A stretch of DNA of 64,000 nucleotides, taken from Schizochytrium sp. TIO01 (taxonomy: Eukaryota > Protista > Bigyra: Labyrinthulomycetes). This document shows, in pieces, positions 12,266 to 51,838 of this stretch (positions are counted from its first letter, which is position 1; each line of letters starts with the position of its first letter). The notes under the pieces are model-generated. The model did no database searches, had not been told where the DNA came from, and saw only the letters and a program-made list of their open reading frames with translations. Made by a program: the position numbers and the translations under genes. Where the stretch lies: the NCBI GenBank assembly GCA_004764695.1, contig SMSO01000037.1, positions 1,030,747 to 1,094,746 on the forward strand, in the 5' to 3' direction.

Positions 12266-12841
12266 GAACGCTTGGATTGTCTTCTTTCTCGTCCACCCCT
12301 TCCAAATGCGCGCCTTCAATGGTATTCAACTTTGAACTGCAAATCAATCGGAGTAGAATGTTGTGCATTCTCCTAAATTCCCCACAAAATAATTGGGTCG
12401 AGCCATTGTTATTGGGATTCACTTCATGTGTTATTGCAGGCAGGCAACGCAGCGCGTAATGCTCTATATATTGTAATAATCCACAAGCTTTCTTAAATGT
12501 ACAAATACGCAAGCCGAAGGCAGGTTACAAATGATAAAATTAATTAAAAACTTATCTAAATTACTCAATTCATCGATTAGATCGTTTCATTCTATAATAT
12601 TGCAAACAAACAACATGAACAATTTGGTTCTTGATAGCTTCATAAACCATGCATGGTATGGTGGTATCCACCTTCTATCAAAATCCCCTCTTGTCAAACT
12701 TCGTAGGTATACACACCCAACCCTGGCTGCGCAGACTTGTTTCACAAAATTTCTATCAAATGATTTTTCTAGTTTTCTAAAATTAGGTGGCATGGTGGTA
12801 TAGATCGATAAGAAACCCTATAAAAGCTCATCAACCCTCAG

Positions 12842-25800: not shown

Positions 25801-27010
25801 TGTGGTTGGCACAGCCGTAGCAGCAGGGGCAGTGGGCAGCGCAGCTGCAATCTCTGCTGCGGTGGAACCCGTACCTGCCACTGACTCACTTGCTAACAAT
25901 TCTGCGGCTACTATTGTAGCTTCCGAGGTGGTCCAAAAGTCTGATATTACCTCCATCGCCTCTCCTGATGTGACTTCAGTGCCAGATGCATCCCCAATCA
26001 AAGCAGCGTCTACCGCATCACCTGCTGCTCCCCCCAAACTCTCAATTGTTGCACCCCCTGGGGCTGCGACCTCCAAGCCAATCGATGCTCCAAGCAGCAA
26101 GCGCAATAGCATGGCAGTCCCGCCAGAGCTCAATAGCATTCAAGAAGCAATCCGAGTATGTGCTGCGATTGTGATTCAGCGGAAGTGGCGTGCAGAACGT
26201 AAGATTCGCAAACAAAAGGAGGCTAAGGAGCAAAAGGTACGCCAAACAAAAGAGGAACTTCAAGCCACTCGAAACCGCTTGCGCAAGATGGTTCTTTCCG
26301 CAATTGTAATTCAACGCGTCTTTAGAGGATTTCGTGTACGCAAATCATTGGCACCAACACGAAAACTGCCGACTGATCTTAAAGTCTCAACTAAATCATC
26401 CACACGTAGTGCCCTTAGTTCCTTCGCGAATCATCTGCGCCGAGGCTCAAACGCTTCGCCGTCAGCGTCGGCACATGCAGCAACTATGTCAGCGCCAACA
26501 TCAGCAAATACTGATGGATCAACAACCAGCGGTGACACTATGGATGAAGCAGCTTCAGACTCCGGAATGAAAAGTACCCGTAAGTCAATGCGCCCGCATC
26601 GCCTCTCTACGCACTTGCGGAGATTCACGTCAGCCTTTAAATCTGGTAAATCATTCTCACAGAAATATGGCCGCACAGAAGAAGAACATTATACCGACGT
26701 AGCCACTCGTGACCCTCGTTATAACTTTTTAGTTGTTCGTTCGCCACCGAGCAGTAGCTCTCCAGCCAGCCCACCTCCTCCCACGCATACTGATCCGGAA
26801 TACCGTCATATTATGAAAATGTTAAAAACCGCTTCAGAGAAACGCAATGTCACCGAGCTCACGCATGCCCTTAAGACTGCATATGATCGAGGCTACATTT
26901 CTGGACCTGAGATCGAGACCGCTGAGGCTGTCCTTGCTCATATTCGCAAGGTACACTTAAAACAGCTAGAGCTTGAGCAGCGTTTAATGGGTGTACCAAC
27001 CAATACCTGA
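22886..27010 (+). CDS. Myosin heavy chain (motor domain, multiple IQ motifs, low-complexity tail)
   Basis: VNPF, P-loop GESGSGKTE, switch I NHNSSRF, YLLEKGRV, switch II LDIFGFE, NSFEQLCINYGNEKL, HYAG, CIKPN, GKTKI; multiple IQxxxRG-type motifs. Confidence 0.95.
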   Translation: MEKDLTALPTVTEESVVNLLKRRFLDEQIFTKLGEEVLIKVNPFRDDIKVDEETKDAGEPRIETLASTAFHDAVRFKKAFSCVMTGESGSGKTEATKVYLKELAGGHRCANEQLQLQLVDSCTLLESFGNCATEHNHNSSRFARWFELHVDTAIGKVVSGRVHQYLLEKGRVVNGSSKSSNFHVLYDICQSFDDRAKGDIEKREDHFKYLCGRAQGVKGRADRWHRMTRQLGHMGVSPMDQTSLEAALWCILYLGNLEFKDIDAGGGAEGCALVPESREALEHVTDLLGMDGDTAGVEALFATRRLRTGREYVTQTRTAVQAHEARDALAKDLYSRIFRYIISAINASIDQKVQGVRDPYRSTTVSILDIFGFERFENNSFEQLCINYGNEKLVQQFHEVLVRAEVAACRAEGVPDGDIGLEDAYEAEQAAKANTIEGINNAFKIIQDETRLPRATDYTLNKKLLQLNLGEPVKLTRIGNPVHFTVNHYAGLVVYNAQGFLVKNRDEAPRGVEEVILEKSNNDFLRGLFASESADEEDDEETGKPKPRAQAKQKTLGVQFRDEFSSLATELAKSSQQFVMCIKPNREASPGYFLDKLVRDQLEANGTLTICRVRQSAFVEHVPKPVFLDRYGFLAEQEKEPETAEDLVHIMTETSCLLDADDLFVGKTKILLRLRGRDKLDVYCEKRDNAAIKVEAFARTVILRCAFLRKRCAAIKVQALIRGVHTREEVARLRIRMLRASLIVQSFIRMVQARKTVEFLRTERRRAVEDSAAVCIQAFVRQILAKAALEKLKTERFQKALLAKQDVAIVRVQSYARMFIAATRYRRTLALARWRRKKVLAAIAVQALVRGWLQRRRLVRARLRLQREAAAAASLAAMNAQRSGSSLDKSKSESADVKLYDGEEDAVQQVAAPVNNRTGTQDVYGAENKPKSLTSTSSSINSEDDRVNAALMNRATIPKSRRKPSKSVTKAAVVGTAVAAGAVGSAAAISAAVEPVPATDSLANNSAATIVASEVVQKSDITSIASPDVTSVPDASPIKAASTASPAAPPKLSIVAPPGAATSKPIDAPSSKRNSMAVPPELNSIQEAIRVCAAIVIQRKWRAERKIRKQKEAKEQKVRQTKEELQATRNRLRKMVLSAIVIQRVFRGFRVRKSLAPTRKLPTDLKVSTKSSTRSALSSFANHLRRGSNASPSASAHAATMSAPTSANTDGSTTSGDTMDEAASDSGMKSTRKSMRPHRLSTHLRRFTSAFKSGKSFSQKYGRTEEEHYTDVATRDPRYNFLVVRSPPSSSSPASPPPPTHTDPEYRHIMKMLKTASEKRNVTELTHALKTAYDRGYISGPEIETAEAVLAHIRKVHLKQLELEQRLMGVPTNT

Positions 27011-32474: not shown

Positions 32475-35100
32475 TTATTGCAAGCTAAAATTTGGACCAA
32501 TGATATCTTGAGTGAGGAAAGGTGCAAGCTGCTTTCGCAGGACACCTTGAAGATATCTATCTTGAATGTGTGTATTCCAGTAATCACGGAGGCGCTCCGC
32601 GCGCAGCAGCTGCCACGCCTCACGAACCTGCTCAAACGAATCAGGAAAATATGGGTCCTGCCCACGTTTCCTTGGACAATGCCGCACATGGCGATGGCAA
32701 GCACCGCTATCCTGAGAACTATACTCCAGGCACCAAGCGCAAAAGTTATGATTGCATCCATCTTGACCACATTTTACAGCACAGCAACCATTGAAATGAT
32801 CGAAGCAAGCGCTGCAATTAGGGCAACATGAATTCAAGATATTTTCCTGAATATAGAGTAAATGCCGTTGTGCATCACGAGTGAGGCCATCAGCTCGTCG
32901 TATTTGGTCCAAACGCCTTCGGATCTCCTGCTCAGCCCAGACCGCAGCTTTGCTTTCAACTCTCATGCGCACAATTCGCAACAAATGGTTCAGAGCATCA
33001 GGTGCAAGACGGGCAATATCTCGACCGAAGATTCTGCCATTGCAGCCAGGCTTTGTGCATAACATTGTTCCACTCGCATCCACCTTAACAGAGGCCTGAG
33101 GTTGAGCAGCGGCTGCTACAGAACTTGCAATGCAGTCTCTGCAGAGGAAGTCGCCATTCTCGCAGCTTGTTCCTTCAGAAAACTGCACTCTTTCCATACA
33201 AATCAGACATGTTTCTACACGAACCTCGACAGCACCGAATGCATTGTGCTGAAGCGCTTCACGAGCACTTGGGCGCAGATTCGGATCTATTGCTTTCAGG
33301 GAGTCAATGAGCTGACGCATTGCAGCTGCCGGAGCAGGATACAGATCCTGTAATACTACTCCTACAGAATACATGTCTATTTTTGCTGTGAATTTATCTA
33401 TACGCCCGTTTTGCAATTCTGGAGCAATATACCCAGGCGTTGCCTGAAAAGACGTGTAGGTTGCAGTACAGTCTGCGATTTTGATGCCATCGAAGTCCCC
33501 TAGCAAAGGAGTCCCGTTATTTGTCAGAAAGATGTTCTCAGGTTTGATGTCGCAGTGTACAATCCCATTGGCATGCAAGTCAGCTACCCCAGCAAGCAAA
33601 CCTATCGCAAGACGATCGCGCACTGCTTTGCCTTCCTTAGAATGCTCTGCAATCCATTTGGCCAGGTCACCTTGTTCATAGAAGGGCATAATAATACAGC
33701 CTCGTAGATCTTCACCAGAGGAGTCAATGAAAGCACTCTTAATGCGGATCACATGCTGAGAAACCACCTTGTCCAGATTAGCAACTTGTTTGTAGAAAGT
33801 TTTAGATTGGCTTGAATGCCCCAGTAAGAATTCTTTCAATACTAGAGTTCTCCCAGCATTGTCGAGAACCTTTCTGACCTTCTTACCGCCTCTGGATGCA
33901 AGAGGCTCCCCAACCGGCTGGAAATCTGAGGTATTCACTGTCGCCAACCAGAGACCTGAGCAAGCAACTTCTAACAGACCCTCTGCGCTAATATGAAGTA
34001 ATTCCAACCACTCCTGATTTTTCAACAGCTCTGGATAGTGAATCTGCGCGAGTCGTAAAGTCTCAGCAACTTTGTGCCGAAATAATTCACTCAGCTCAAT
34101 AGGAGTTCCTTTAGCAAGAACACCCTCATGCCTTGCAATTCGAGATCTGCACTGAACTTTTTCTTCTTCTGATTCTTCTACTTCGAGATCAGCTTTTGCT
34201 CGTTTCAAGCCCTCCATCGCGTTCCTGGAATCTGTGAGCTGCTTGTAAAGGTTTTTTAAATGGTCTACATCGGGTTCCCTCATACCCAACTGAACATAGT
34301 CCTTAATCTCCATGAATATCTTCAGTGAAGGTCTGGTAGAATTCGAAAATTTGATAGTTTCTGCACTTTCAAGCTGTTGCAATATAGAGCCAACAGACCA
34401 AAGAATTTTCGCTACCTCCGCTACCAACTTGTCCTCCTGGAACATACTCTGGATATAGAGTAGCTTGCACTCGAAAGCCGTTGTCCCTTCTCGTGCTCTG
34501 GCATCACGGTAGGAAGTATCTCCTTGACCCAACTCAGATTCTCCCGAGCGCACTCTTTTAGAAATGACGTTACTCGGTTCCTCCATCTCGCTTAATCTAC
34601 CTATTTTGTTCAATCTGTACGCTTTCACACACAATCTGGCACGGCCAACAAGGTTACGAACACAATCTAGAATATTTCCATCAATATTCTGGGCGGCGCT
34701 AAGACCATCAATGGTGTCCAATCTATCCAAAAGAGAGTCAAGCTTAACTTTAAACACACGCATCACATCGGCATCATAATGTTCATGGATATTGTCTCGT
34801 CCAGCTCGCAAATAGGAGTACACGATAATTAAAAGCGCTCTTAGTTGGTTTCTTTTGTTGTTGCGTTGTTCAACGAGACTAGACAGTCGATGTTGAGAAC
34901 TTGCACGAATTTGGTCTTGGAGAGTCTCTAAGGAGGTTTTCGATTTCATAATATCACAGAATGCTTGTTGAAGCTTCATTTGGAGAATGTATTTTTGAAC
35001 TGATGGCGATGCAAATTCTTCGAGCAAGGTGATACCATCATTAAGAAAATCATCTCCGCTGCCGAGACTCACGCTGACAGTCGCTATTTTCCTTACCAAG
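32475..35100 (-). CDS. Terminal exon: helical region + protein kinase (approx. 33920-33235) + RING1 (approx. 33210-33030) + Rcat/IBR-like Zn finger (approx. 32830-32670)
   Basis: Kinase motifs VLKEF, MPFYEQGDL, IVHCDIKPENIF, GDFD, TPGYIAPE, DMYSVG, RPSAREALQH. Zn fingers CLIC...C...LCRDC...C.KPGC and CPNC...GCCAVKC...C.HNFCAWC...H.HV..C. Confidence 0.92.
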
Positions 35101-38100
35101 CTTCATTTTGAAGTTCTTGAGAACATTATCCAGCAGATCTCTGTAATGTCCAACTTAAGCAGGTTAGAATTTCATGAAAATAAAGTGTTATATCACATCT
35201 ACTTGAACTGTGTCGTAATCCTCAAACTTACGCATTTGCATTCAAATTCCGGTTCCCGGCCGTGTCTTCAGTTTTTTTCAAATCCTCAGTTGTCTTATTA
35301 GAGCTATGAAAACTCCACAACCATGTGCAAAACCAAACCACAAAAACAATGCAGAAAGATACAACAAAGGAGACATACCGAAGTAAACAAGGAAACAGAT
35401 CTAGCTGAATTACCAAAGTTATGGCGCGTAAACTAGAAATGCCGATACACTGCATGCAAGTACCTAGTACCAAAACAAACCTAAAAACAAAGAATTGACC
35501 TGACGAAAGGGTCAAATTTAGAAACCAGAGAACCTGAGCAACAACTGCAGTCACACCTGTACGTACCCTAGTACATATTGTTGGCTGCTCAGCCACCTTT
35601 GAAACTGGGTACAACCTGTCAAGTATAAACGAAGAAGCACAAATACAACCAAAGAACTAGTTAGGAGCTCACCGTATAAAATAAATCAACGAAGAAATTG
35701 CTTTAGCTTCCATGGGACGAGATACAAGTTACTTGTGTTGAAGACATGAACTTACCACACTGTTGTAAGGTTCTTGCATTCTTTGAGAGCGATTGCCAGT
35801 GCCTGGGCATCTTCAGTACCAATGTTGTTAAAAGAAAGACTGTGTTGAGCAATATACAAAAAAACAAAATAAGAAAGCAAGAGCAACGTCAGTCATCTCA
35901 ACTGCCGCGTGGAATCGTCACAAGCACTTTTTGATTGCTTCTCCTGGTTGGTCTGTCCTGCTAGACGCATATATATTGCATTCTCACGATTCTTCTGCAA
36001 CCATCTTGATGTCGTCATTTCATATTGACGGGTCTTCTATGGGACTAGATGCAAGCTACTCGTATTGAATAAATGAACTTACTCCAATGTTGTGAGGTTC
36101 TTGCATTCTTGGAGGGCTCGTTCCAATGCCTGAGCACCTTGCGTGCCAATTTCGTTTCTCCGAAGACTGTATTGAGTAATATCAAAACGCGAAGAAAGCA
36201 AGAGCAAAGTCAGTCATCTCAACTGCCGAGTGGAATCGTCACAAGCACTTCATGATTGCTTCTTCTGGTTGGTGTGTCCTGCTAGACGCATATATTTTGC
36301 ATTCTCGCGATTCTTCTGCAACCATCTTGATGTCGTCATTTAATAATGACGGATCTTCTATGGGACTAGATGCAAGTTACTCATATTGACTAAATGAACT
36401 TACTTCAATGTTGTGAGGTTCTTGCATTCTTGGAGGGCCCGTGCCAATGCCTGGGCACCTTGCGTGCCAATGTTGTTCCAAGAAAGACTGTGTTTAACAA
36501 TATCAAAAATCCCAAAAAAGCAAGAGCAACGTCAGTCATCTCAACTGCCGAGTGGAATCGTCACAAGCACTTCATGATTGCTTCTTCTGGTTGGTGTGTC
36601 CTGCTAGACGCATATATTTTGCATTCTCGCGATTCTTCTGCAACCATCTTGATGTCGTCATTTCATATTGACGGATCTTCTATGGGACTAGATGCAAGTT
36701 ACTCGTATTGAATAAATGGACTTACTCCAATGTTGTGAGGTTCTTGCATTCTTGGAGGGTCCTTGCCAATGCCTGGGCACCTTGCGTGCCAATGTTGTTG
36801 TTCCAAAGACTGTGTTGAGCAATATCAAATCCCCAAGAAAGCAAGAGCAAAGTCAGTCATCTCAACTGCCGAGTGGAATCGCCACAAGCACTTTATGATT
36901 GCTTCTTCTGGTTGGTGTGTGCTGCTTGACGCTTGCATTTTGCATTCTCGCGATTCTTCTGCAACCATCTTGATGTCGTCATTTCATATTGACGGATCTT
37001 CCATGGGACTAGATGCAAGTTACTCGTATTGAATAAATGGACTTACTCCAATGTTGTGAGGTTCTTGCATTCTTGGAGGGTCCTTGCCAATGCCTGGGCA
37101 CCTTGCGTGCCAATGTAGTTGTTCCAAAGACTGTATTGAGCAATATCAAAAATCCCAAGAAAGCAAGAGCAAAGTCAGTCATCTCAACTGCCGAGTGGAA
37201 TCGCCACAAGCACTTTATGATTGCTTTTCTGGTTGGTGTGTCCTGCTTGACGCTATCATTTTGCATTCTCGCGATTCTTCTGCAACCATCTTGATGTCGT
37301 CATTTCATATTGACGGATCTTCTATGGGACTAGATGCAAGTTACTCGTATTGAATAAATGGACTTACTCCAATGTTGTGAGGTTCTTGCATTCTTGGAGG
37401 GCCCGTGCCAATGCCTGGGCACCTTGCGTGCCAATGTTGTTGTTCCAAAGACTGTGTTGAGCAATATCAAATTCCCCAAGAAACCAAAAGCGAAGTCAGT
37501 CATCTCAACTGCCGAGTGGAATTGTCACAAGCACTTTTTGATTGCTTCTCCTGGTTGGTCTGTCCTGCTAGACGCATATATATTGCATTCTCACGATTCT
37601 TCTGCAACCATCTTGATGTCGTCATTTCATATTGACGGGTCTTCTATGGGACTAGATGCAAGCTACTCGTATTGAATAAATGAACTTACTCCAATGTTGT
37701 GAGGTTCTTGCATTCTTGGAGGGTCCTTGCCAATGCCTGGGCACCTTGCGTGCCAATGTTGTTGCTAGAAAGACTGTATTGAGTAATATCAAAACGCGAA
37801 GAAAGCAAGAGCAAAGTCAGTCATCTCAACTGCCGAGTGGAATCGCCACAAGCACTTCATGATTGCTTCTTCTGGTTGGTGTGTCTTGCTAGACGCTTAT
37901 ATTTTGCATTCTCGCGATTCTTCTGCAGCCATCTTGATGTCGTCATTTCATATTGACGGATCTTCTATGGGGCTAGATGCTAGTTACTCGGATTGAATAA
38001 ATGGACTTACTCCAATGTTGTGAGGTTCTTACATTCTTGGAGGGTCCTTGCCAATGCCTGGGCACCTTGCGTGCCAATGTTGTTGCTAGAAAGACTGTAT

Positions 38101-38943
38101 TGAGTAATATCAAAACGCGAAGAAAGCAAGAGCAAAGTCAGTCATCTCAACTGCCGAGTGGAATCGCCACAAGCACTTCATGATTGCTTCTTCTGGTTGG
38201 TGTGTCTTGCTAGACGCATATATTTTGCATTCTCGCGATTCTTCTGCAACCATCCTGATGTCGTCATTTCATATTGACGGATCTTCTATGGGGCTAGATG
38301 CTAGTTACTCGTATTGAATAAATGGACTTACTCCAATGTTGTGAGGTTCTTGCATTCTTGGAGGGTCCTTGCCAATGCCTGGGCACCTTGCGTGCCAATG
38401 TTGTTGTTCAAAAGACTGTGTTGAGCAATATCAAATCCCCCAAGAAAGCAAGAGCAACGTCAGTCATCTCAACTGCCGAGTGGAATCGTCACAAGCACTT
38501 TATGATTGTTTCGTTTGTATGGGGTTTTTCGGCTAGACGTATATCGTGCTCTTTCACGACTTTGCCGAGATTATTTTGAATCTGTAATTTAATATCCACG
38601 GCTCTTTGATGTGATTTTTTTTTGCAATTAATTGATCTTGAATTTGTTATTCCTCCAATGTTTCCAGGAGGTTGCACCTTTTTAACGGATTTGCCGGTGT
38701 CCGAGTAGGCTCAAGACAAGCTGCTTGTTCGAGAGCTCTGTGAAACAAAGTACGGCAGGGGATACTGGAAAACAAAGCAAAATTGCTTCAGACTTTGTAT
38801 CTGTATCTCCCACTGGCATTGATGCGCTTGGGAACTTACCAAATTTCTGTGGTATCTGGATTGATATTCTCAATCCGACGAGCACTTTGTATTCTGCTAG
38901 GGGGGGGCGCAATGGCACGCTGGCTGGCCCTACCTTTTCTCAT
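32475..38943 (-). CDS. Spliced LRR-array / hydrophobic segment / Ser-Thr kinase / RBR-type E3 protein, ~1289 aa. Model exons: 38943-38840, nine LRR exons, 35615-35232, 35100-32475
   Basis: All 11 modelled introns are phase 2 and start GTAAGT. The joined length is 104+9x84+384+2626 = 3870 nt, in frame with no internal stop. The first exon ends ...DTTEI-C and continues into LLNNNIG, completing an LRR motif across the junction. The acceptor at 35101 is weak; 35074 is an alternative phase-2 acceptor. Confidence 0.7.
35232..35615 (-). CDS. 384-nt hydrophobic linker exon (phase 2-2)
   Basis: Polypyrimidine-TTGACAG acceptor at 35616-35617, perfect GTAAGT donor at 35231, and an open frame in phase with the LRR exons. 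It may contain internal introns. Confidence 0.55.
35756..35839 (-). CDS. LRR exon 9: LSFNNIGTEDAQALAIALKECKNLTTV
   Basis: 84 nt between CAG and GTAAGT; RI-type LRR. Confidence 0.88.
36083..36166 (-). CDS. LRR exon 8: LRRNEIGTQGAQALERALQECKNLTTL
   Basis: 84 nt between CAG and GTAAGT; RI-type LRR. Confidence 0.9.
36404..36487 (-). CDS. LRR exon 7: LSWNNIGTQGAQALARALQECKNLTTL
   Basis: 84 nt between CAG and GTAAGT; RI-type LRR. Confidence 0.9.
36726..36809 (-). CDS. LRR exon 6: LWNNNIGTQGAQALARTLQECKNLTTL
   Basis: 84 nt between CAG and GTAAGT; RI-type LRR. Confidence 0.9.
37047..37130 (-). CDS. LRR exon 5: LWNNYIGTQGAQALARTLQECKNLTTL
   Basis: 84 nt between CAG and GTAAGT; RI-type LRR. Confidence 0.9.
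37368..37451 (-). CDS. LRR exon 4: LWNNNIGTQGAQALARALQECKNLTTL
   Basis: 84 nt between CAG and GTAAGT; RI-type LRR. Confidence 0.9.
37690..37773 (-). CDS. LRR exon 3: LSSNNIGTQGAQALARTLQECKNLTTL
   Basis: 84 nt between CAG and GTAAGT; RI-type LRR. Confidence 0.9.
38011..38094 (-). CDS. LRR exon 2: LSSNNIGTQGAQALARTLQECKNLTTL
   Basis: 84 nt between CAG and GTAAGT; RI-type LRR. Confidence 0.9.
38332..38415 (-). CDS. LRR exon 1: LLNNNIGTQGAQALARTLQECKNLTTL
   Basis: 84 nt between CAG and GTAAGT; RI-type LRR. Confidence 0.9.
38840..38943 (-). CDS. Putative first coding exon of the LRR-kinase-RBR gene (MRKGRASQRAIAPPPSRIQSARRIENINPDTTEI)
   Basis: Ends TG|GTAAGT (phase 2) at 38840/38839. An upstream pyrimidine-rich CAG acceptor at 38972-38973 suggests a further 5' exon, possibly UTR. 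Confidence 0.65.
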
Positions 38944-40860
38944 TCTGCTTGAGTAATCCCTGACCAGGGCTCTGAACAAAAACGAAAAGTATCAAGTGCA
39001 GATGATAAAACCTTTGACTTGGCTCATAAATACGCACGTTTGCAAGTTGAGTGGTGGTGGATTGCCGTTATGGAGCGGTATGGCTGTCTAGTCAGGGTTT
39101 CGGGTTTGCTTGTAAATCTTCGGTGCAATTCTGTGATCTGGTCTGCCCATTCTAGTTGCCTTTTGATTTGTTGTTATTTAAAAGTTTTCTACTTCCGGCT
39201 TTACTATAATTGACTAATATCATTAGCTAGCATCAATAAATATTTCATGGAATGGTTATGAGCCTCTAGCTTTCCGGGTTCATGGTGATTGGCTAAAATT
39301 TCGCATGCCATAACAGAGTCTCTGCGGAGATGTCATGTAGTTGGCGGCTTAAAGGTTTCTATTCTGCCCATTAAGTATATGACGAAAATGCGACAGCTGA
39401 AAGCAGAGAGCCTCAGACTTGGCTACGGAAGCTTTCTATTTATTTTGGGATCACTTAAACTTTTATTATAACCCCATTGATCTCGGTAATATGAGAATGA
39501 AGCTATAATATGCACGTTTAGAGGGGGTATGAAACGTCTAATAGCTCTGGCTCCTGATATTGAGAGCGGCGAGATCCTTACTAGATTAATAACTACGTAT
39601 TGGGTGCCTATGAAAAGGCAGTATTTTTTTAATTCGAGGCCCACTCTTTATTAGACAAAGAGCCGAATCCAGGCATGAAGAAGGTTATAACTTAAGGAAC
39701 TTTACTGTCGTAATAATTTCTATGAATTGATGAACTAGAGAAACGTCAGAGCACTTTGATTGATAGCTCTGCAGCATGCAAAAATAAAGTATTCACGCGA
39801 CAAGGAGAAGAGGAAAACACTCAGGCAAGAATCTGGCTTAAGCCCAAGCTTGCAAATGAACTTCACCTGTAACACCGTCGAAAGAAGCCAGGGGAAATGC
39901 GCGCTTAGGTCAAAGCCGTTCCTTCCAAATTACGCGCTCTGCATCAGTCTACTGGAACAGCCATGAGGACGAATTTAAGTTCTAATCATGTGGAAGATTA
40001 CTTGCTTTTGCCCACTCATCATTGCGCGAGATAGAATATTATCGTATTTCAATACTCAAGACTCTCTTCCTCTCAAAGCAGAAGGTTGCAAGTACAAGAC
40101 ATGATTTGAGATATGGGGAAACTGCTTTGAAGGCTAGAAGTACTACATACGCTGCTCATCTCTTTCTATACTTCTATAACTTTAAATGAACTAGTCAGTG
40201 GTGATTTGCCGGACGTCTTTTCTTATCTCTTTTAGTTGATTATTACTTTCGCGGTGTTTTTTCTTTTGAAATCGAAGTTACAAAAGGCTTCCACATTTCC
40301 ACTTTTTTTTACTTCCTGTAATAAAGGTAGTTCTACTGCATATGAGCCGTATGCAAAAATACAAACGAGTGGCGCAGCGCAGTGAACTATGTAAAGAACA
40401 TTCAAAGTGGGACGAGTTGCTTAGACTATAAGTTTGAGGGTTTTGTTAACATAAATCCTTCTATCTACGCCTGAAGGTGGCCAAAGAGGCAATACTAGCT
40501 CCATTTGCTCCAAGTAGATACATGAAATAAGGGTGCATATGCGCGGCGTCTCATTCAGATAACATACATGAACTTTAAGATGGCAATGCATTAAATCCAT
40601 CGGAGGAAGATTTCTTGCTCCTACTGTCGTATTCTTTACTCCAAAAAGGTACGTGCTTCTTGCTGAGCTCCTTCTTGGACGACTTCCTATAATTTCAATA
40701 CCTTCTTTTGGTATTGCAAGTCATCAAATCAGTACAGAATCTTTAAAAGGGAAAGAATAAAATTTAGTAGAAAAGCACGTTTGCTAAGAGTACGTAGTTT
40801 CATGGAACCTCAAGCAGAATAACTTACATTTGCTGGGCTTAGGGGCTGCCAGAGACTGTG

Positions 40861-43800
40861 CTAGAAATGTGCGGGAACCTCTAGGTCTTGCTCTAATCTA
40901 TCCAGCGCCTGATTTTCATGCTGCGGCATTGGTCTCTGCGAAGAAGATGCATTCGAAGTGCAAGAAGCTGTAGACCAGGAGGATCTTGATTTGCTCGGCG
41001 GGGAGAGAGACGAAGTCTCCGAATTGATCTCACGAGTCTCGATGGTGGGCCTGCGGCGGCGATTTACTGGCTGGGCAAGCCGTGACCACTGGTCAGACTC
41101 GCCAGGAACAGCGCCAAGATTACCTAAGGCTTGTCGCATTGTCTGGTTAAGCGACTCGATCCGCTTATCCTTGCGCTTCATGAGTGCCTGAAGTTTGGAG
41201 TTCTGTACACGAAGCTCCGACAACTCGAACTTGACCTGCTTTAGATGCTGGATCTTCTGACGATGATTTTGATGGCCAGTCAGAGCAGCATTTTCAGTGG
41301 CAAGGCGGCTGAGTTCTTCGCGCGCCCTTTCTTGCTCAGCTTTTGTAAGAGCAAGTTCATTGCTGCGTGAGTCAAGATCTTCAGCTAGCAAGTTACTCTC
41401 AGCGAGTTTAATACGGTAGACGTGAACTTGTGTTTCCAGAGAGCTTTCCTTTGCAACGGCTGCATCCAACTGATCATGCAGGTCGTGCACCATCTGTTTA
41501 AGTCGTTGCACATGCTCATGATCAACCCTTGCAGCCTCATGTTCTAAGTTCTCCATTTGGGTCTCAAGATGCTCGATCACTTGTAGCTTTGCATGGAGCG
41601 TACCCTCAGCATCCTCACGAGCTGCTTTCTCTACTCGGAGAATCTCTACCATCTTCCCATGCTCCGTTTTCAATGCGTCGAGCTCATGGTTTGTCGAAAG
41701 CACTTCATGCATAGCTGCCTCAAGCTCACGCTTGAGCTCGGCGTGGGCATGCTCAAGTTGATCAAAGGCTGATGATTTACTTTCTAGATGTTGAGTGATT
41801 TGTAATCGGCAATTCTTTTCAACACAAAGATCATTTGTAATTGACTCTTGGGTTTTCTCAAGTGCTGAAAGCTGCTCGCGCAGTGATGTTTCCCGTTCTT
41901 TACATGCAGTAAGTTCTGCGTTCAACTCCAAATGGGTTTGGGATAGTGAGGTCAATGCACTAGCACTGTCTGATAAGTTAGAATTTGTTTTTTGATGTGC
42001 TTCGCGTTCGATTTGCAATTCCTGCTGCCAGTGAGGACTTTGCAGTTTGCAAGTCTGTCAACTTGTTTCGAAGATCTTGGCACAGTGCTGACGAGGCCTC
42101 CAGCTCTGACTTGAGTTGATTGAACCTGAGGGTCAATTCTGTCAAGTCCAATGTTTTCTTTTGAAGCTCTATTTGGGTTGTGATATTTGCCTCCTGTTCG
42201 GCCTGGAAGGCGACGGACACATCGTTGTGAGATTTTCGCACAGAGACGAGCTCATCTTGCATAGCACGTTTGTCGCCCTCAAGGGTTCGAATTGTTACTT
42301 CCAAGCTGTCTTGCCGCGATTTGAGTTCATTATGCTGCTGTAGAAGAGTGGTGAATTCACCCCTTTCTTGTGAAAGGTCATTCTCCAGCTGCAATGACAA
42401 GCTCTTGGAAGTAGCGATAGTTTCCTCATGCAAAGCAATCTGTTCAGAAAGTTCCGTGACTTTTGCCTCAAGGTTTGCACGAGCCTCAATAAGCTTCGAC
42501 TCTCTGACGTGTTGTTCTTCCATGGATGCTTTCAGACTATTTTCGTTCGCAAGACGCTGCATATCCAAATCTTCGAATTTGCTCTGAGATTCTTCTTGAA
42601 CACGCTTTGCTTCCGCCTTTGCAAGCTCAAGTTCTGACAAAGCGCTTTGAAGTTGGGATTGTGTCTCAGCCTGGCGATTCGCTTGGGCTGAATAGAGCTC
42701 ACAAAGGGAGGCTACAATCTGGTCTGCATCTTTATGATCAACGTCAGGGGAGAGCTCGAAACTTGAAGAGAGTCTGCTGAAGTGACCTTGCAGAGTGTCA
42801 CGCTCATTGGTAATTTGACACAATTCAATGTTTTTACTTTCAAGTTCAGTTTCCAAGGCTCCAAAGCGAGTACGGAGATTGGACAGTTCATCGCGAGCAC
42901 CATGCAGAGCATTGTTAAGCTCATATATTTGTGCAGTAGAACTAGAAGAAAGTTCATCAAGTTTCTGCTGGGAGGAAAGAGCCTTAGACTCCCATTCTTC
43001 CGCATTCTGCGCATGATTAGTTTTTTCGGTTGTGAGCTGTGAGATGCGGGCATTAAGGTCAGCTTGTAATTGCTCAGAGCTCTGCAGATGCTCTTGAAGG
43101 TCTTTATGCTTTTGTTCAAACTGCTCTCGTAATTCTTGCTCTTGCTCCAAGCGTTGTTGGACTTGGGATTCCAATTCACCGATACGTGATTTGAGTGCTA
43201 CGGATCGGTTCTCTGCCTCACTCAAAGCCTCTGCTTTTGTATTTGCATCCTCTCGCCAAAATTCAAGAGCTTTTTCTTGCTGCATCATATCAGCTTCTTT
43301 CGAGGCAAACTGATTATTCGCATCATCGAGCTGCTTCTGTGTACTTTCAAAGTTTGAGCGTGCTGCGTCTAAATCAGACAAGGCTGCATCAAGCTTACCC
43401 TTTGTTACATGCAAGCTGTGTTGTGAGTCTTGCAACTCAGAAGATAGTGTGTCGATCTTTTCTTCAAAAACAGTAGCAGCCTGATGCCTCCTTTCTTGTT
43501 CCTCTCGAATCTCATCCTTAAGCTCAATGCAAGTTTGCTCCAGAGCTCCAACTTCTTTTTCTGCGTTGATTTTGGCATCCTGCTCACGCAACAAGCTGTC
43601 TTCCAAGTCAACTTGCCTAATTTCAAGATCCCGGATTTGCTCTTCTGCGGTTCCAAGTTGAGCACGTAATGCATCCAGGGCATGTTCAGTCTCGGCTTTT
43701 TCTGTGCACAAGACTTCCATAGCCTCTCTGCAGTGGGATATATCTTCTTCAAGACAGGAGATTTGGCCTTGAGCATCAGCCAAGGCGTCACTCATTGAGA

Positions 43801-45019
43801 ACTCAGAGGTTTCCAGGGCATCGACAAGCTCAGCTTCGCGCTTTCTGAATTGCTCACGGAGGCTGATTGCCATTGCCTCGGCTTGTTCGAGCGCTTGGCT
43901 TGTTTTCCGCGAAGCACCAAGCAGCGCTACCTTTTCCTTCACGTTGCGTTGGCATGCGTCAGTGATGAGACGCATTTGCTCGAGAAGGGCGCGCGTTGAT
44001 TCAGTCTGCTCCTTCACTGTACGCTCAGAAGCTTGCAGTTTGGCTCGAAGATCATGAGCTTGCTTGCGCTTCTGGTCATAGGCAGACTGAGATGCGTCCA
44101 AAGATGACTGTACACGCAAAATTTCATCAGCACAAGTTCGATTTTCAATGATGAGGCCTTCGTTTTCTGTAGTGAGAAGCTCAATTTCCTCTTGCAGAGA
44201 TGCTATATAATCATTATCTGTCTCTGCACTTGCCCACATTGATTTATCTTCTTCCACAGGGTGTTGAAGAGCACAACTGCACTCAATAGCTTCCACAACT
44301 TGTTCGGACATGTCCCATTCGCCTTCGACAGCTGCATCCCGCTGATTTAATGCGGCCTTTTGAAGAAGGTTGTGCTGCTGGCGCAGTCTTGAAAGTTCGA
44401 TGGCTTTACAAATCCTTACCAGCTCCAGGTCGTAGGCACGTCTCTCAGCAATATCTTTGAATTTTTCCTCGCGCTCAAGATTTCTGAGGGCAGCAGCGGC
44501 GGCAGCACTGGCAGCAATTCCCCTGCGTGAGGTTTTCCGGAGCTGCTGCTGCAGACTGGGAACCTGACTGGCTAGCTTGGAGTTTTCAGCTAGCTCTGCC
44601 TCGAGCTGTCGCAACCGGCTTGATGAGTGTTTAAGATGTCTGGTCAAGTTGTCTTTCTCAGCCAGCAATGTGCGGAGGCGCTTACGAAGTCTTTCAGTTT
44701 CAGACTCAGCAGCTTGAGGTACATTAAATTCGACGGCGCGCTCGGGAGCTAAGCTTTGTCGACGGAAGCTGGGAGGGCGGGGTTTGCGAACACTTTGTGC
44801 ACCCGCCTCAGCATCAAGTTCCACGTTATAGGCACCAGGTCCAAGATTTTCTGCATCTTCGTCATTGAGGAATCGTGCTGTTCCACTGATAGTTAGGTTT
44901 TGATAGGCTTTGGATTTGAGAGCTTCTGCAGCTTTGTCTACATCATAGGCGCCAGGGCCGAGGCTGGGGTTCTTGCCCTTATCCTCCCAGAACCTTTGAA
45001 CCTTTGATTTACTAAACAT
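40861..45019 (-). CDS. HMMR: HMMR/RHAMM-like long coiled-coil protein, ~1385 aa, with a 1-nt frameshift near 42020-42030
   Basis: The N-terminus MFSKSKVQRF...PSLGPGAYDV resembles the HMMR start (MSFPKAPLKRF...PSPGAYDV). The C-terminal LTGHQNHRQKIQHLKQVKFELSELR matches the HMMR/KIF15 basic-zipper motif. Two overlapping ORFs join if one base is removed. Confidence 0.7.
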
Positions 45020-46261
45020 CTCTGCTCTTTTCTTCCTTGACCGAGGTTCGTGTTTGCTCCTTATAGGTTGATTCCAAAGTTGCAAGGGCTTCGAGCTGCA
45101 AAGAGGTGTCCTCTGTTGGATATGGCTCACTCTTGAGCCCAGAAATGCCTACACTACCTTGTTTCGCCACAGCGCACAATCCTCGTAGTATAGAACACAA
45201 AACCAAGCACCTAAAGGGTGAATGAACAATGTTCTGTTAGACAATCTGTAGCCCCGAAATCAAGCCAAATGGAAGACGAACGCTGCAGTCTTTGGCAGAG
45301 GTTTACAAAGACAATTTAACTTGCGTCAAAGACAGCAAAGTTATAGCTAAAACAACAGCAGCAAAAGGTGAATGAGTCTCGACAAAGAACCCACGCAGCA
45401 ACAACAGGCAACCACGCCTGCTGGCCCGCGCGTTGTCACCGACTGGAGATTTCCGGTCTGCTGACAGTTGGACTTTTCCGATTTGGTCTGTCCCAGCGTT
45501 TATCTTAGCCTGCTCAAGCAGACAAGGTTAGTTATGATCAGGATTTACATGGAACTGCTCGTTTGCTCACAGTAGTCTCCAGCAAGCCCAAACGGCGGTT
45601 GCACGCCACGGGCATTCCCCGTGTTCCTCGAGTTAGATCCGTTGAAGGGCGAAATAAATGGAGGGTGAGGACGAAAGGGCACTTGGAACGATGAACTGCG
45701 CAGGGAGGTTCTGCGGATAGGCACACGAGAGCAAATGATAGTTTGATTTGGAGCAGCGACTAGATGCTATTTATCTAGATGGTAATAGGAGTAGTTGGTG
45801 TGTAGGGAAAGGATATGATTGGACAGGCAGGATTTCCCTATTTGTAGAAATGAGAACAGTGCATATACGTGCCTCATAGTGTGTACTTTATTCGTGTGAG
45901 CATTTAAGATCTCAACAATGAAGGTGGTTTACACAACGTTGAGTCGGTACTAAGGAAAACGTAGTTTGGTAGATAATTATATTGCTTGCACTAGCAGCAA
46001 TGAGCAAGGAGCAGGTAGCATAAGGACAAAATTCCTTAGCTTGGTTGGCGAGGTTAGCTGTTTAGCAACAGTCAAGCTGCACTGCCAAGGTGCGTATAGA
46101 CACAGACAGCGAAAGCTGGCTGAGTAAAATTAGAACTGATTAAAATCAATCCTTCTGGCGGAGGTATTGAAGTGCGTGCTTAAGCTCAAGGCAAATTTGA
46201 CGAGTGCTCTCCTGCAAGATCGAATCACGAAGCAAGGGTGGGGTTTCGTAATTTAGGCGTC

Positions 46262-48379: not shown

Positions 48380-51300
48380 TTAGGCAATGTTGATGCGGGC
48401 CTCGTTAGGCATAGTCCACCCATGATCAGGATCATGGGTTTGGGAATGTTCATCATCATTCTCGAAATCATCTAGCATTTCGTTCGAACGAGATAGTGAT
48501 GTAGACGCGCCATGGTCGCTGTGTAACTGACCTTGGTGTGACGAGCAGTCTCCGTCATCGCTTCTATGATGAGTGTTGAGGTTTCGGTTTATCTGCAAAC
48601 TTGTGCGCGGTACAATAGGGTTGTTGAGTAATCGATTGGTAGAGTTCTCCTCGGCATCATAGCTTGAGCTTTCCGCTAGGTGGTTTTGGTTGTGAAATTG
48701 CAATGACCGGGCCTCACCAAGCAGAATTTGTGCTTCGTCGCGCGTCAAGCTTGACGAATCAGTGCCTGAGTTGTGGTGCTGGTCTTCCAGAAGGGATTCG
48801 GGTGTGTCCAAATTATGGACGGTGTTAGGCTTACTAGAATGCCGTGAAGATTGTACTCGGGCGTCGTGTTCTTTGGCTTCCCCTCTTCGCGGAGAATATT
48901 TGTGAATATAATGGTTTTGGGGTCGGCCTTGATTAGGCGATCCTCGGCCTTGTGGAGGATGGGACTTCGCGTGCCATACTGCGTGAACCTTCGGGCCCAT
49001 AACAAAAACAAGCGCAAACATATTAGCCAGAACAATAGCAAGGCAAATGATGATGAATTTGGTGCGCGTCTCTGTTGCACTAACAGCGAGAATAATGGGC
49101 GCAGCAATTAGATAGAGCTGGAACTGCCACATTACAGCAACAGCGAGAGACTTGCCCTCCTGAAAAGAACTATCCACATCACGTACACGATATGCGATTG
49201 TGGCACCAATAAAGTAAAAGCTTACATGAAAGGCTAACAGAAGCCACATGCAAGATTTTACAACGAGCGAATCGCTAAAGTAACACGTTGCATAGCTCAC
49301 CGCAGGGTTCCCAAAGTTGTCTTCCACAACAACGATACGTTTCCAAGTCATAGGATCAATGACGGATGGCACTATTAATAAGATGATGTTGATAATCAAG
49401 ACAGTGGCGAGCACTTTGAATAAAGAGCTAGCGGTAATGAGAAGAAGGCGCAAACTTGGATTGTGAAAGATGCGCATAATACGGTACAATTTTAGGATGA
49501 TCGCTGTAGCCGTGGTTGTTGTACCGAGACTTAAAAGCCAAAGGAAGGCGTTACAAGCTACCCCTGCAGAAGCATCACCGCTTGCTTGAGTATCAGGGTA
49601 TGTGTAAGCAATGACGCTACTGATGGCCATGCATATCCCAAAGAGAAAAATGAAGAGGAATTCTGGTTGCGATTTGCGAACAACATGGGTACGGCGATTG
49701 ATAAACACCCAGACAGCGAGAGCAATGCAAATACAAAAGACCATAGCTACTACAGTGTTGGCAACAATTCGATACTCTTTGCCAATCAGATTTTCTATTT
49801 CAATAGGAGGATCAACTTGGAGTGGAATTACCGTGGTCCCCCCGGGAAAGAGGGTACGAGGACCAATTGTCCAGCTAATATTCCAGGATCCTACATCCAC
49901 TACACTCACACTTAAATCATCTGGGTCTACTATGAAGTTGCGAAGCTTATAGTAAGCTGTTTCAGGCACACGAGAGCCTGTGTATTCGTCAAATTCAACT
50001 CGGCCCGAAGCACCTTGAAACGGGAATTGAGATCGGTTCCGCAAGATATCGACTAGTGCGTCACCTCGAAGCCAGTAGGGGCGTTCGTCAATCCCGTCAA
50101 ACGTTGGGGCCCCAGATGTACTATTTGTTTCCTCTGGGTAACCAGCTTTTCTGTAGGATTCACATGTGGCTCGGCAGGCAGCTGCAACTGCGTCATAAGC
50201 GTATGCAGCATCATAAATGAATGATTCTGCATTATCCCGGTCAAACATGGTCTCATCAATTTGGATGGTCATGTTATCTACTCCATCTAAGTATCCGTTC
50301 GTCTCGGTTGGTGTTGAAAAATGCTTGCCACTTGGAAGATAGTCGTTAATAGTATCCATGTATTTGATGAAAGAAGGCCAATTGGTATGAAGGCGTTGGA
50401 AGACGGGGTTTGAGTCATCACCACTGATCGCCAATACTGCTTGAGTGGCATTAAAAGCGGGTGCAAGGGTTGGGTTGGCTTGAATGATAGTTGTGAGCTC
50501 ATGAGAGCCGATACCATCGCCAACCACTAAGAGTTTGCCTTCTCCTATCATATCATGTGCATGAAGGTTACGTAGAATGGCTTCAAAGTCTCCCGTGAAT
50601 GCAATGACAATAATTGCATTAAAGCCTGTGCTTTTCGCGCTGCTCACTGCGTACTTGATCGAGTCTACATCGCCCTCTTCGTAGGAAAATGTCTGTACAT
50701 CGATATCATGCGTTGCGGTCTCCTTGACGAGTGACTCACGGTACCCGTCACCATACGAGTCATCAACGTAGAGGAGGGCTGCATGTTCAAGGTTGTATTC
50801 GAGTAAAAGATCCGAGACAGCATTGGCAATCGCACTATCGGCTGGTATTGTACGTAGAAATTGCTCATGAACTCCATTGTCATCAAAATCTGGGGAGGAG
50901 GCCCAGTAAGATATAATGGGTACCTTATTCACATTGGCAAGAACTGAGATGGGCAGCGACGTAACGGAGCGGGAGGTGCCAATGACAAAGTTGGTCGGTT
51001 TATCTTCACGCATGAGTCCGGACAAGTATGCCTTTACGGAGCCAGACTGCACACTGAGCGTATCGTAGCTTGTCAGGTCAAAGTCCATATTTTCACAGCC
51101 TTGCATGTACTGCGCGCCCAGCTCAGGGATTACGATGTCGTTTCTTTCTTGGCAATGCTGTGTTGCAATGACCATTGCCGACACTTTGCTGGTGAGCACC
51201 ATGCCAATGCTTTTGCGTACTCCTGTGTCATTATACAGCGTCAAGCCTGTCAGCATCGATAGCGTGATCTTCCTTCGACTGCTATCTTGATTGGTCTCTG

Positions 51301-51838
51301 TCGTATTGGTGTCGTTTGTCCCTGCCGTTCGTCTTGCAAATGACTGAACATTTTGAAGACTTGCCTCCTCCCATTCAGCGTGACCCTGTTCGTCGCCAAA
51401 GTCCCACATCTCCGAGTTCGATACTTCCTCTCCTTTTGAAAATTTCCAAAGATTTCTATGTGTTTTCTGCAGCTTCTTATTCCTTGGTGCGGGTTCTATT
51501 GACGGTGTCCTTTGTGCACTCCTTAATCTTTTGTTCATGTGTTTCTCACGGTTGCCTAGGTTTTCATCAGCCTCTGCAGCTAAAGGAGAGGTATACAACG
51601 TGGTCTTGTGCATCATCGCAGAAGACTGCTGCTGCGCTGGGCTTGATGAGGCGCCGCTGGGAGTCACAAGAACTACTGCAAGGACTGCCAGGACTATCGT
51701 TGCCAGTTTCCGTGCGCCAGTTGATTGTTTCCTGCACATTTGTTTTCTTGAACGTGCCATTTTGCGTGGGGAGGTCAAGGTTATCGTTGTGGACGTCGTC
51801 GTTGTCGTCGTCGTTGAAGAGAAGGAAGGTGAGGTCAT
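48380..51838 (-). CDS. Class C (GABA-B/mGluR-like) GPCR: Venus-flytrap (ANF receptor) domain + 7tm_3
   Basis: N-terminal hydrophobic signal/anchor; VIGTSRSVTS...VPIISYWASSP...FLRTIPAD, DSYG, YAYDAV, FQGASGRVEFD; 7TM region with RKSQPEFL, C..FLWLLSLG, LKLYRI.RIF, R.V...FQEGK, PK. Confidence 0.93.
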   Translation of the reverse strand: MTSPSFSSTTTTTTTSTTITLTSPRKMARSRKQMCRKQSTGARKLATIVLAVLAVVLVTPSGASSSPAQQQSSAMMHKTTLYTSPLAAEADENLGNREKHMNKRLRSAQRTPSIEPAPRNKKLQKTHRNLWKFSKGEEVSNSEMWDFGDEQGHAEWEEASLQNVQSFARRTAGTNDTNTTETNQDSSRRKITLSMLTGLTLYNDTGVRKSIGMVLTSKVSAMVIATQHCQERNDIVIPELGAQYMQGCENMDFDLTSYDTLSVQSGSVKAYLSGLMREDKPTNFVIGTSRSVTSLPISVLANVNKVPIISYWASSPDFDDNGVHEQFLRTIPADSAIANAVSDLLLEYNLEHAALLYVDDSYGDGYRESLVKETATHDIDVQTFSYEEGDVDSIKYAVSSAKSTGFNAIIVIAFTGDFEAILRNLHAHDMIGEGKLLVVGDGIGSHELTTIIQANPTLAPAFNATQAVLAISGDDSNPVFQRLHTNWPSFIKYMDTINDYLPSGKHFSTPTETNGYLDGVDNMTIQIDETMFDRDNAESFIYDAAYAYDAVAAACRATCESYRKAGYPEETNSTSGAPTFDGIDERPYWLRGDALVDILRNRSQFPFQGASGRVEFDEYTGSRVPETAYYKLRNFIVDPDDLSVSVVDVGSWNISWTIGPRTLFPGGTTVIPLQVDPPIEIENLIGKEYRIVANTVVAMVFCICIALAVWVFINRRTHVVRKSQPEFLFIFLFGICMAISSVIAYTYPDTQASGDASAGVACNAFLWLLSLGTTTTATAIILKLYRIMRIFHNPSLRLLLITASSLFKVLATVLIINIILLIVPSVIDPMTWKRIVVVEDNFGNPAVSYATCYFSDSLVVKSCMWLLLAFHVSFYFIGATIAYRVRDVDSSFQEGKSLAVAVMWQFQLYLIAAPIILAVSATETRTKFIIICLAIVLANMFALVFVMGPKVHAVWHAKSHPPQGRGSPNQGRPQNHYIHKYSPRRGEAKEHDARVQSSRHSSKPNTVHNLDTPESLLEDQHHNSGTDSSSLTRDEAQILLGEARSLQFHNQNHLAESSSYDAEENSTNRLLNNPIVPRTSLQINRNLNTHHRSDDGDCSSHQGQLHSDHGASTSLSRSNEMLDDFENDDEHSQTHDPDHGWTMPNEARINIA

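Follow-up and report, generated by a model that had tools for sequence, protein, structure and literature searches.

The nearest known system to the gene described here is the family of leucine-rich repeat (LRR) ROCO genes in the brown algae Ectocarpus and Saccharina, which carry one LRR per exon between phase 2 introns and show exon shuffling and positive selection on the repeats' concave face (PMC3341825; PMC11378527). LRR exons of these genes are also used alternatively in splicing (PMC11378527), and the families have been proposed as immune receptors. We analysed a 64-kb stretch of Schizochytrium sp. TIO01 (hereafter the window; C36:1030747-1094746 of a 64-Mb, 37-contig genome), in which positions 32475-38943 on the minus strand are one 12-exon gene, real and expressed, with a tandem array of single-LRR exons. 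Coordinates are window positions unless a contig is named. In order, the gene encodes a short N terminus and nine LRRs, a hydrophobic linker on an exon of its own, and a helical region that is followed by a Ser/Thr kinase and an RBR-type E3 ligase; the array is the sensor part of a kinase and RBR E3 gene, not a free-standing element. To our knowledge, hardly any candidate immune repertoires have been described from heterotrophic protists. The window gene provides a concrete, transcript-supported model for a candidate member of one, in which a kinase and an RBR ligase are fused to a sensor of ribonuclease inhibitor (RI)-type LRRs.

The sequence-only reading of this DNA had likened the locus to the brown-algal genes, and the comparison is apt (PMC3341825, PMC11378527). 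Both systems are from stramenopiles, and they share exons of constant length, phase 2 introns, duplication and shuffling of units, variation on the concave face, and clustered, fast-evolving families. They differ in the repeat (84 nt and 28 aa of RI/NOD2 type in the window family versus 72 nt and 24 aa of plant-like type in the algae), in the effector (kinase and RBR E3 versus Roc-COR), and in the near-identical introns and the association with subtelomeric ribosomal DNA (rDNA) that mark the window family. The idea of exon shuffling from brown algae would extend to a second, distant stramenopile lineage with another LRR class and another effector.

Tandem Repeats Finder delimits one tandem array at 35707-38512, with a period of 321, 8.7 copies, and 92% matches. 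A regular-expression scan identified nine minus-strand exons of 84 nt, each with CAG before it and GTAAGT after it: E1 (38332-38415), E2 (38011-38094), E3 (37690-37773), E4 (37368-37451), E5 (37047-37130), E6 (36726-36809), E7 (36404-36487), E8 (36083-36166), and E9 (35756-35839). With their eight introns of 237-243 nt, they make up an LRR array at 35756-38415. Each exon consists of 1 nt, 27 codons, and 2 nt, so all introns are in phase 2; because exon length is constant and a multiple of 3, and the intron phase identical across the nine exons, any subset of them stays in frame. Each encodes one 28-aa LRR, L-xx-N-x-IGTQGAQALARxLQECKNLTTL, plus a split codon. The residue pairs behind the conserved Leu are, in gene order, LN, SS, SS, WN, WN, WN, SW, RR, and SF, the residue behind the conserved Asn is N, Y, or E, and the split codon yields C, D, or N (D at six of the eight LRR-LRR junctions and N at one), with W at the last junction. 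The CAG and GTAAGT exon boundaries, the 2-2 phase, and the individual variable residues, other than the last-junction W, had been proposed in the sequence-only reading, and our scan reproduced them exactly. Variation in the array is confined to three codons (2, 3, and 5) and to positions 15-17, with positions 25-26 fixed as TT. Six pair types occur among the nine exons, five of which have the pair of a neighbor, and recent duplicates are still identical; diversity inside the window array is modest. An Rfam search of the window and two paralogue loci gave no match, so the conserved introns contain no known RNA family.

The repeats are of the RI/NLRC type, as had also been proposed. All nine exons fit the pattern that defines this class, a 28-29-aa period in which LxxLxLxxN/CxL is followed by a GxxGAxxLAxxL amphipathic helix, and Pfam LRR_6 matches every exon on its own, with E values from 1e-3 to 2e-2. 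A profile built from eight exon peptides has the NOD2 LRR domain as its best PDB match (5irl, E=3e-8), followed by GALA proteins, ribonuclease inhibitor (RNH1), and RanGAP. The variable residues sit on the x positions of the LxxLxLxxNxI strand motif, in agreement with their earlier assignment to the ligand face. The same 28-aa class, LxxLxLxxNxIGxxGAxxLAxxL, occurs in animal NLRC/NOD2 proteins and ribonuclease inhibitor. In animals, NLRC/NOD2-type LRR exons are modular and in phase, and RI/NLRC-type genes carry either two repeats per exon or one plus two halves. The window gene departs from these in having one repeat per exon, near-identical tandem copies, and no NACHT or NB-ARC domain; Pfam detected neither of the two in any exon, nor any Roc or COR match, and the missing NTPase (NACHT/NB-ARC) sets the gene apart from the NLR/STAND proteins. 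With the variable lymphocyte receptors (VLRs) of lampreys and hagfish it shares LRR cassettes, an invariant scaffold, a hypervariable concave face, and a large genomic store of cassettes. However, VLR germline genes are incomplete and are assembled somatically by copy-choice, whereas the window gene is complete and undergoes ordinary splicing, so it is not VLR-like in mechanism. Nor does it resemble plant-type LRR receptor-like kinases, as it has RI-like LRRs, no signal peptide, and a linker with two to four possible membrane segments rather than a single transmembrane segment.

To place the array in a transcript, we aligned four public runs, in the form of Logan contigs, to 34700-40699. Assembled contigs carry neither strand nor isoform counts, and the minus strand of the transcript follows from the orientation of the GT..AG intron ends. 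Run X4, with 99-100% identity to the window, is RNA-like: both the introns and the intergenic stretch have zero depth. An X4 contig of 1683 nt passes from E9 to 35615-35232 and on to 35140-34700, removing introns of 140 and 91 nt. Other X4 joints remove intron 1 between E1 and E2 (38095-38331, GT..AG; joint 38094>38332) and a 424-nt intron between exon 1 and E1 (joint 38415>38840). Four predicted junctions are unambiguous in the RNA contigs, two more are compatible with them, and DNA run X2 has none of these joints, which bears out the earlier claim that the exons are transcribed from the minus strand and spliced. Two further joints lead from "38332" into E7 and E9. The sequence behind them is only 22-23 nt long and is the same in E1-E6 and E8 at their 3' ends, so the joints agree with ordinary splicing of E6→E7 and of E8→E9 and are not evidence of skipping. 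Across the contigs of the four runs, which cannot count isoforms, there is no unambiguous exon-skipping joint: the long joints are ambiguous, exon ends are identical, and the material consists of assembled contigs only. In X14 and X22, two runs under other organism labels with an identity of 90-99%, exon 1 leads into an E2/E3-like start (LSS) and not into E1 (LLN). This joint reflects either a strain difference in the variable codons of E1 or an E1 that is absent or skipped.

The coding part of exon 1 (38840-38943) comprises 34 codons and 2 nt. It starts with the ATG at 38943, the first in frame after an upstream stop and the end coordinate given in the sequence-only reading. The N terminus, MRKGRASQRAIAPPP, is not hydrophobic, and there is no signal peptide. 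Exon 1 ends in the motif IENINPDTTEI, which is found again ahead of the first LRR in paralogues (a weak tblastn match in the C30 paralogue, and also the transcript-derived protein P0143). The transcript reaches upstream to at least 39085-39134, with RNA contigs covering 38840-39085/39134. These contigs stop there in 30 loose letters that differ between runs and occur nowhere in the 64-kb window; chimeric contigs, leader sequence, or strain differences are possible sources. Intron 0 (38416-38839, 424 nt, GT..AG) is supported by the X4 joint and absent from X2 as a joint, and intron 9 (35616-35755, 140 nt, GT..AG) by the 1683-nt contig. The linker exon that follows (35232-35615, 384 nt) has 127 open codons when read on from E9. 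Its product is rich in Cys, Phe, and Val and strongly hydrophobic, with two to four possible membrane segments by Kyte-Doolittle analysis; it has no Pfam match and no tblastn counterpart in the paralogue loci. Intron 10 (35141-35231, 91 nt, GT..AG) is removed by the joint 35140>35232 in X4, X14, and X22, which X2 lacks.

The last exon (32475-35140, stop codon at 32475-32477) encodes the helical region, the kinase, and the RBR-type E3. Exons were searched one by one, and a joined translation was made only as a check of frame continuity. Exon 1, E1-E9, the linker exon, and the last exon read in one frame except at 35075-35077 (minus), where an extra A in an A-run shifts the frame of the last exon in the window assembly. 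Without this base, the frame enters an 874-codon open reading frame (ORF). The extra A is absent from all four public runs, including RNA contigs that are otherwise identical to the window. The likely cause is a homopolymer error made in assembling long reads, or else a private change, with the transcripts intact.

Downstream of a 391-aa helical region, which has no Pfam family and no look-alike in a protein atlas, lies a Ser/Thr protein kinase with approximate bounds of 33234-33926 (minus; Pfam Pkinase E=1.3e-29). The region matches PDB kinases at E=4e-15, and the motifs VLK, HCDIKPEN, APE, and DFD (a variant of DFG) do not vary within the family, so that the kinase looks catalytically complete. 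The remainder of the exon (32478-33230, minus) is an RBR-type E3 module with a RING1-like finger, long helices, and an Rcat/RING2-like finger. Searched alone, the last 251 residues gave a weak match to parkin RING2 (E=0.49), ungapped and with all Cys aligned at parkin-like spacing around the putative catalytic Cys. A search of 1.84 billion representatives returned 1582 relatives of this tail, and a profile of 97 sequences matched parkin at 2e-7, RNF216 at 1e-6, and HOIL-1 at 1e-5, as well as ARIH2 and HOIP. In this profile, the first finger, C-x2-C-x11-C-x3-(H/D)-x2-C-x2-C…C-x4-C, aligns to RING1 of parkin and RNF216 (E=2e-7 to 1e-6). The AlphaFold2 model of the tail built on 97 sequences reached a predicted local distance difference test score of 95, against 59 with 9 sequences, and the top Foldseek matches of the 97-sequence model, ranks 1-13 included, are almost all RBR ligases. 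Taken together, the profile, the model, and the Foldseek matches identify the tail as an RBR-type E3, and alignment places a putative catalytic Cys in Rcat. While these 250 C-terminal residues match parkin, RNF216, HOIL-1, and Ariadne in RING1 and Rcat by both profile and fold, there is no recognizable Cys-rich IBR between the fingers, where the model has long helices instead, and Pfam IBR_2 scores only E=3.5, on the Rcat region. The window gene also differs from these ligases in having Asp in place of the RING1 His and in the fusion of the module to a kinase and repeat sensors.

We next asked how the array varies, using units E1-E8 and I1-I8 and counting minimum steps per site rather than codon-model likelihoods. 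In the introns, 45 of 237 columns vary (0.207 steps/site), compared with all six columns of codons 2-3 (1.33 steps/site; Fisher p=6.7e-5 versus introns) and 9 of 78 columns in the rest of the exon (0.128 steps/site). Synonymous changes number 4 over 18 sites, about the intron rate, and 8 of the 13 nonsynonymous changes fall in codons 2-3. Codons 2-3 have thus changed about 6x faster than the local neutral proxy, the introns, and the scaffold is constrained; this clustering of variable nucleotides takes the array beyond chance. The array grew by tandem duplication of intron-plus-exon units, and the units are young: 5 of 321 nt separate the youngest pair, [I1+E2] and [I2+E3], only 1-3 nt distinguish E4-E6 from one another, and introns of the array differ by 2-12%. 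We regard the local signal of diversification as real but modest.

The genome holds a large family of related genes. The kinase/RBR exon has at least 52 paralogues with 52-63% identity, most of them with intact frames of 900-970 codons and mostly adjoining subtelomeric rDNA. An LRR-exon profile produced 1694 candidate matches in the genome, and all 150 that were scored are significant. Paralogous kinase exons are preceded upstream by arrays in which 5 to at least 17 exons, each exactly 84 nt and in the same phase, are combined with the scaffold LxxNxIGSEGAKAVAKALEGCKNLQTL and introns of ~340 nt. Family statistics cover 8 arrays and about 110 exons. In 56 units from six arrays on six contigs, diversity (pi) was 0.035 in introns (0.02-0.05), 0.019 in scaffold codons, and 0.023 at scaffold third positions, against 0.435 in codons 2, 3, 5, 8, and 25-27 and the split codon. 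In the subtelomeric members, the hypervariable codons cover every x position of LxxLxLxxNxI, near saturation, while identity across the genome is 97-98% for introns and for scaffold codons. Every family array is hypervariable at these same positions, and the paralogous arrays have a 12-20-fold excess over introns at concave-face positions. The diversifying pattern claimed in the sequence-only reading is therefore very strong in the paralogues; in the window array, with its six pair types, it is only moderate.

Several features of the family point to recombination. Intron distance is hardly greater between arrays (0.038) than within them (0.026). Cassette order is scrambled, with 1 of 51 adjacent pairs common to arrays, and 57 exons contain 26 hexamers at codons 2-3, a given residue pair being nearly always encoded by the same codons. 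In type-B arrays, the 3' variable patch falls into two deep haplotype classes, CTT CAA ACT TTA… and CTG ACT YNN CTG…, which carry linked synonymous Leu changes between flanks that are 97-98% identical. Together, these results suggest that cassettes are copied and reshuffled by recombination in homogenized introns and scaffolds, and that selection maintains their diversity; the family pattern is not accounted for by point substitution alone.

The window gene is a deep-branching, chromosome-internal member of this family. In a maximum-likelihood tree of the kinase/RBR region, the subtelomeric copies form a tight clade that excludes the window gene, whose long branch has an unresolved placement with three relatives from other data sets. 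The search for paralogous arrays and donor exons that had been suggested for this locus did find arrays, but no second copy of the 321-bp unit: only its exon part matches elsewhere, at 75-79%, so the genome contains no donor cassettes of the window type. Another member, P0146, is a complete transcript-derived LRR-kinase-RBR protein of 1240 aa (MMETSP0960), 100% identical to C13:1153892-1156630. Its gene (C13:1152392-1158130) has LRRs on separate 84-nt exons with introns of ~85 nt, and transcript-derived paralogue proteins match 84-nt exons exon by exon. The design is therefore present with introns of 85, 237, and 340 nt and with transcripts in more than one member, and the layout shared by P0146 and the window gene indicates that one LRR per exon is ancestral in the family.

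The same tail also occurs in other arrangements. P0143, a transcript-derived protein of 399 aa, lacks the helical and kinase parts, its four one-exon LRRs leading straight onto the RBR tail; in the genome it is matched best by a 340-codon frame at C31:8498633-8499445 (94%). Kinase-less family members thus exist and are expressed. The kinase and RBR tail is a widespread module (P0146-P0171): in other proteins it follows ankyrin repeats (Hondaea fermentalgiana) or WD40 propellers, and in a relative from Durusdinium trenchii it follows an N-terminal part for which PQQ_2 is the sole match, below threshold. The ankyrin and WD40 relatives fit a modular sensor-kinase-E3 design. A metagenome scan with the kinase/RBR alignment returned generic kinase matches only and no related arrays.

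The subtelomeric position of most paralogues led us to compare them with LORE-TEARS, subtelomeric repeats of 366-529 bp in Aurantiochytrium limacinum that were published as spacers "lacking similarity to GenBank" (bioRxiv 10.1101/2023.06.15.545109). At C7:24232-29592, just upstream of an 18S gene, a 391-bp array contains at least 12 intact 84-nt LRR exons; it has the position and the period (about 385-391 bp) of LORE-TEARS Group 0. Arrays at C4:2689-9632 and 11953-14119 match Group 5 (about 421 bp) in period (about 419-428 bp) and in position, and on C4 a 419-bp array of this kind is the LRR array of a kinase/RBR gene. At least two LORE-TEARS classes appear, then, to be coding LRR exon arrays rather than spacers. 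Subtelomeric arrays of 371 bp and 532 bp hold no 84-nt LRR exons, and the 321-bp array of the window is neither subtelomeric nor within the published size range. In the literature that we searched, no paper links LORE-TEARS or Aurantiochytrium to LRR genes. The comparison links the family to enigmatic repeats of a model thraustochytrid with persistent mirusviruses. On the strand of the Group 0 array, an 873-codon ORF encodes Roc, COR-A, and TIR (C7:37372-39990, minus). A link between this ORF and the array is unsupported, as the ORF lies ~7.8 kb upstream of the array and further ORF fragments occupy the interval, and the ORF is not linked to the window gene.

Given its architecture and evolutionary pattern, we lean toward the view that the window gene encodes an LRR receptor under diversifying selection, which may serve as an innate-immune-like or non-self sensor. 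Its LRR solenoid would form a germline-encoded recognition surface whose specificity is renewed over evolutionary time by duplication and loss of units and by recombination in the conserved introns. Concave-face residues would be under selection for diversity, and a bound ligand would activate the kinase, the E3 ligase, or both. Several points weigh against this view. An immune role is suggested by architecture and by evolutionary pattern only, the paralogues have nothing that corresponds to the linker exon, and there is no signal peptide. Within the window array, variation is limited to codons 2, 3, and 5 and the patch at 15-17, 25-26 are fixed, five of nine exons share a neighbor's pair, and the rate statistics rest on eight units. 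Part of the family diversity, given the linked synonymous Leu changes, represents old cassette lineages and not new adaptive substitutions. Lastly, the window assembly has a frameshifting extra base, which is contradicted by the reads. The hypothesis of diversification can be tested in a culturable organism with existing RNA-seq and long-read data.

The limited diversity of the window array could also be read as that of an ordinary signaling LRR-kinase, in which repeats were recently expanded by replication slippage or unequal crossing-over and variable sites are under relaxed constraint, with no repertoire. The youth of the units, with introns only 2-12% different, the retention of a neighbor's pair in five of nine exons, and the location of the gene among housekeeping genes rather than at a subtelomere are all as expected in that case. 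However, relaxed constraint predicts at most the intron rate, which codons 2-3 exceed ~6x here and the paralogues 12-20x, and it does not account for hypervariability of the same positions in every family array. We consider this explanation unlikely, though the strongest of the alternatives.

A hypervariable LRR surface might face something other than pathogens, such as self versus non-self, mating partners or kin, or substrate and prey sensed at the ectoplasmic net. Any arms-race or allorecognition system should leave the same signature, the hydrophobic linker suggests a membrane anchor, and subtelomeric contingency families in other microbes often have surface or recognition roles. On the other hand, RI/NOD2-type LRRs with free cysteines and no signal peptide point to a cytosolic sensor, and the TIR- and Roc-COR-containing subtelomeric neighbors fit immune-type signaling better. 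A role of this kind is, in our estimate, rather improbable.

Diversity might instead arise within individuals, either by regulated skipping or choice of in-phase exons, as in DSCAM or brown algae, or by somatic or clonal exchange of cassettes among >1000 LRR exons, as in VLRs or antigenic variation. The uniform length of 84 nt and phase 2 would permit this, brown-algal ROCO arrays do use LRR exons alternatively (PMC11378527), X14 and X22 join exon 1 to an E2/E3-like exon, and the near-identical family introns genome-wide are good substrates for recombination. Against it, no joint shows skipping unambiguously, the long joints resting on 22-23 nt common to most exons, the X14/X22 joint could equally be a strain difference in the variable codons of E1, and the window-type introns have no other genomic copy and hence no such donors. 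We give such a mechanism only a small chance. An active, programmed version of it, in which the invariant introns and scaffolds are the substrate of gene conversion or cassette exchange among the >1000 LRR exons, or of regulated exon choice, strikes us as a similarly long shot. If it were true, clones or single cells would differ in receptor surface, and a free-living heterotrophic protist would possess adaptive-like or contingency recognition, with the window gene as a stable, expressed prototype.

Finally, a decaying gene or a satellite-repeat assembly artefact, as the frameshift at 35075-35077 and the ease with which tandem repeats are mis-assembled might suggest, is already largely refuted and very improbable, since the extra base is missing in all four runs, RNA contigs included, reading frames and splice sites are intact in all nine LRR exons and in the 384-nt linker, spliced contigs exist, and the scaffold is more conserved than the introns.

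Outside the gene, the window contains a myosin with IQ motifs (22886-27010, plus), an HMMR-like coiled-coil protein in two adjoining ORFs (40861-45130, minus), and a class-C G-protein-coupled receptor with an ANF-receptor domain (48380-51838, minus). These are ordinary genes, so the LRR gene of the window is not in a subtelomere-like setting, and no telomere repeats occur within the 64 kb. Elsewhere in the genome, telomeres are (TTAGG)n, 18S rDNA lies near many contig ends, GC content is 45%, and no light-harvesting genes are present. These traits, together with the locus identical to an MMETSP0960 transcript, agree with the published account of Aurantiochytrium limacinum (bioRxiv 10.1101/2023.06.15.545109), to which the genome would probably belong on this evidence. 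Over 35674-35900 (E9 and its flanks), run X2 has two contigs of about equal depth, one identical to the window and the other different at 14 of 188 positions, a sign that the 3' end of the array may exist in a second, divergent allele.

Among the paralogous loci, we also observed a third type of 84-nt LRR exon array (L015:1402-2191 and L018:535-1741), with a period of 215-275 nt, GTGAGT donors, short introns, and non-repetitive repeats, which adjoins type-B arrays on the opposite strand. Beside the 17-exon LRR array of C30 lies a 1678-codon Gag-Pol-like ORF (C30:1684244-1689280) that, judged by its sequence alone, resembles a Ty1/copia retrotransposon.

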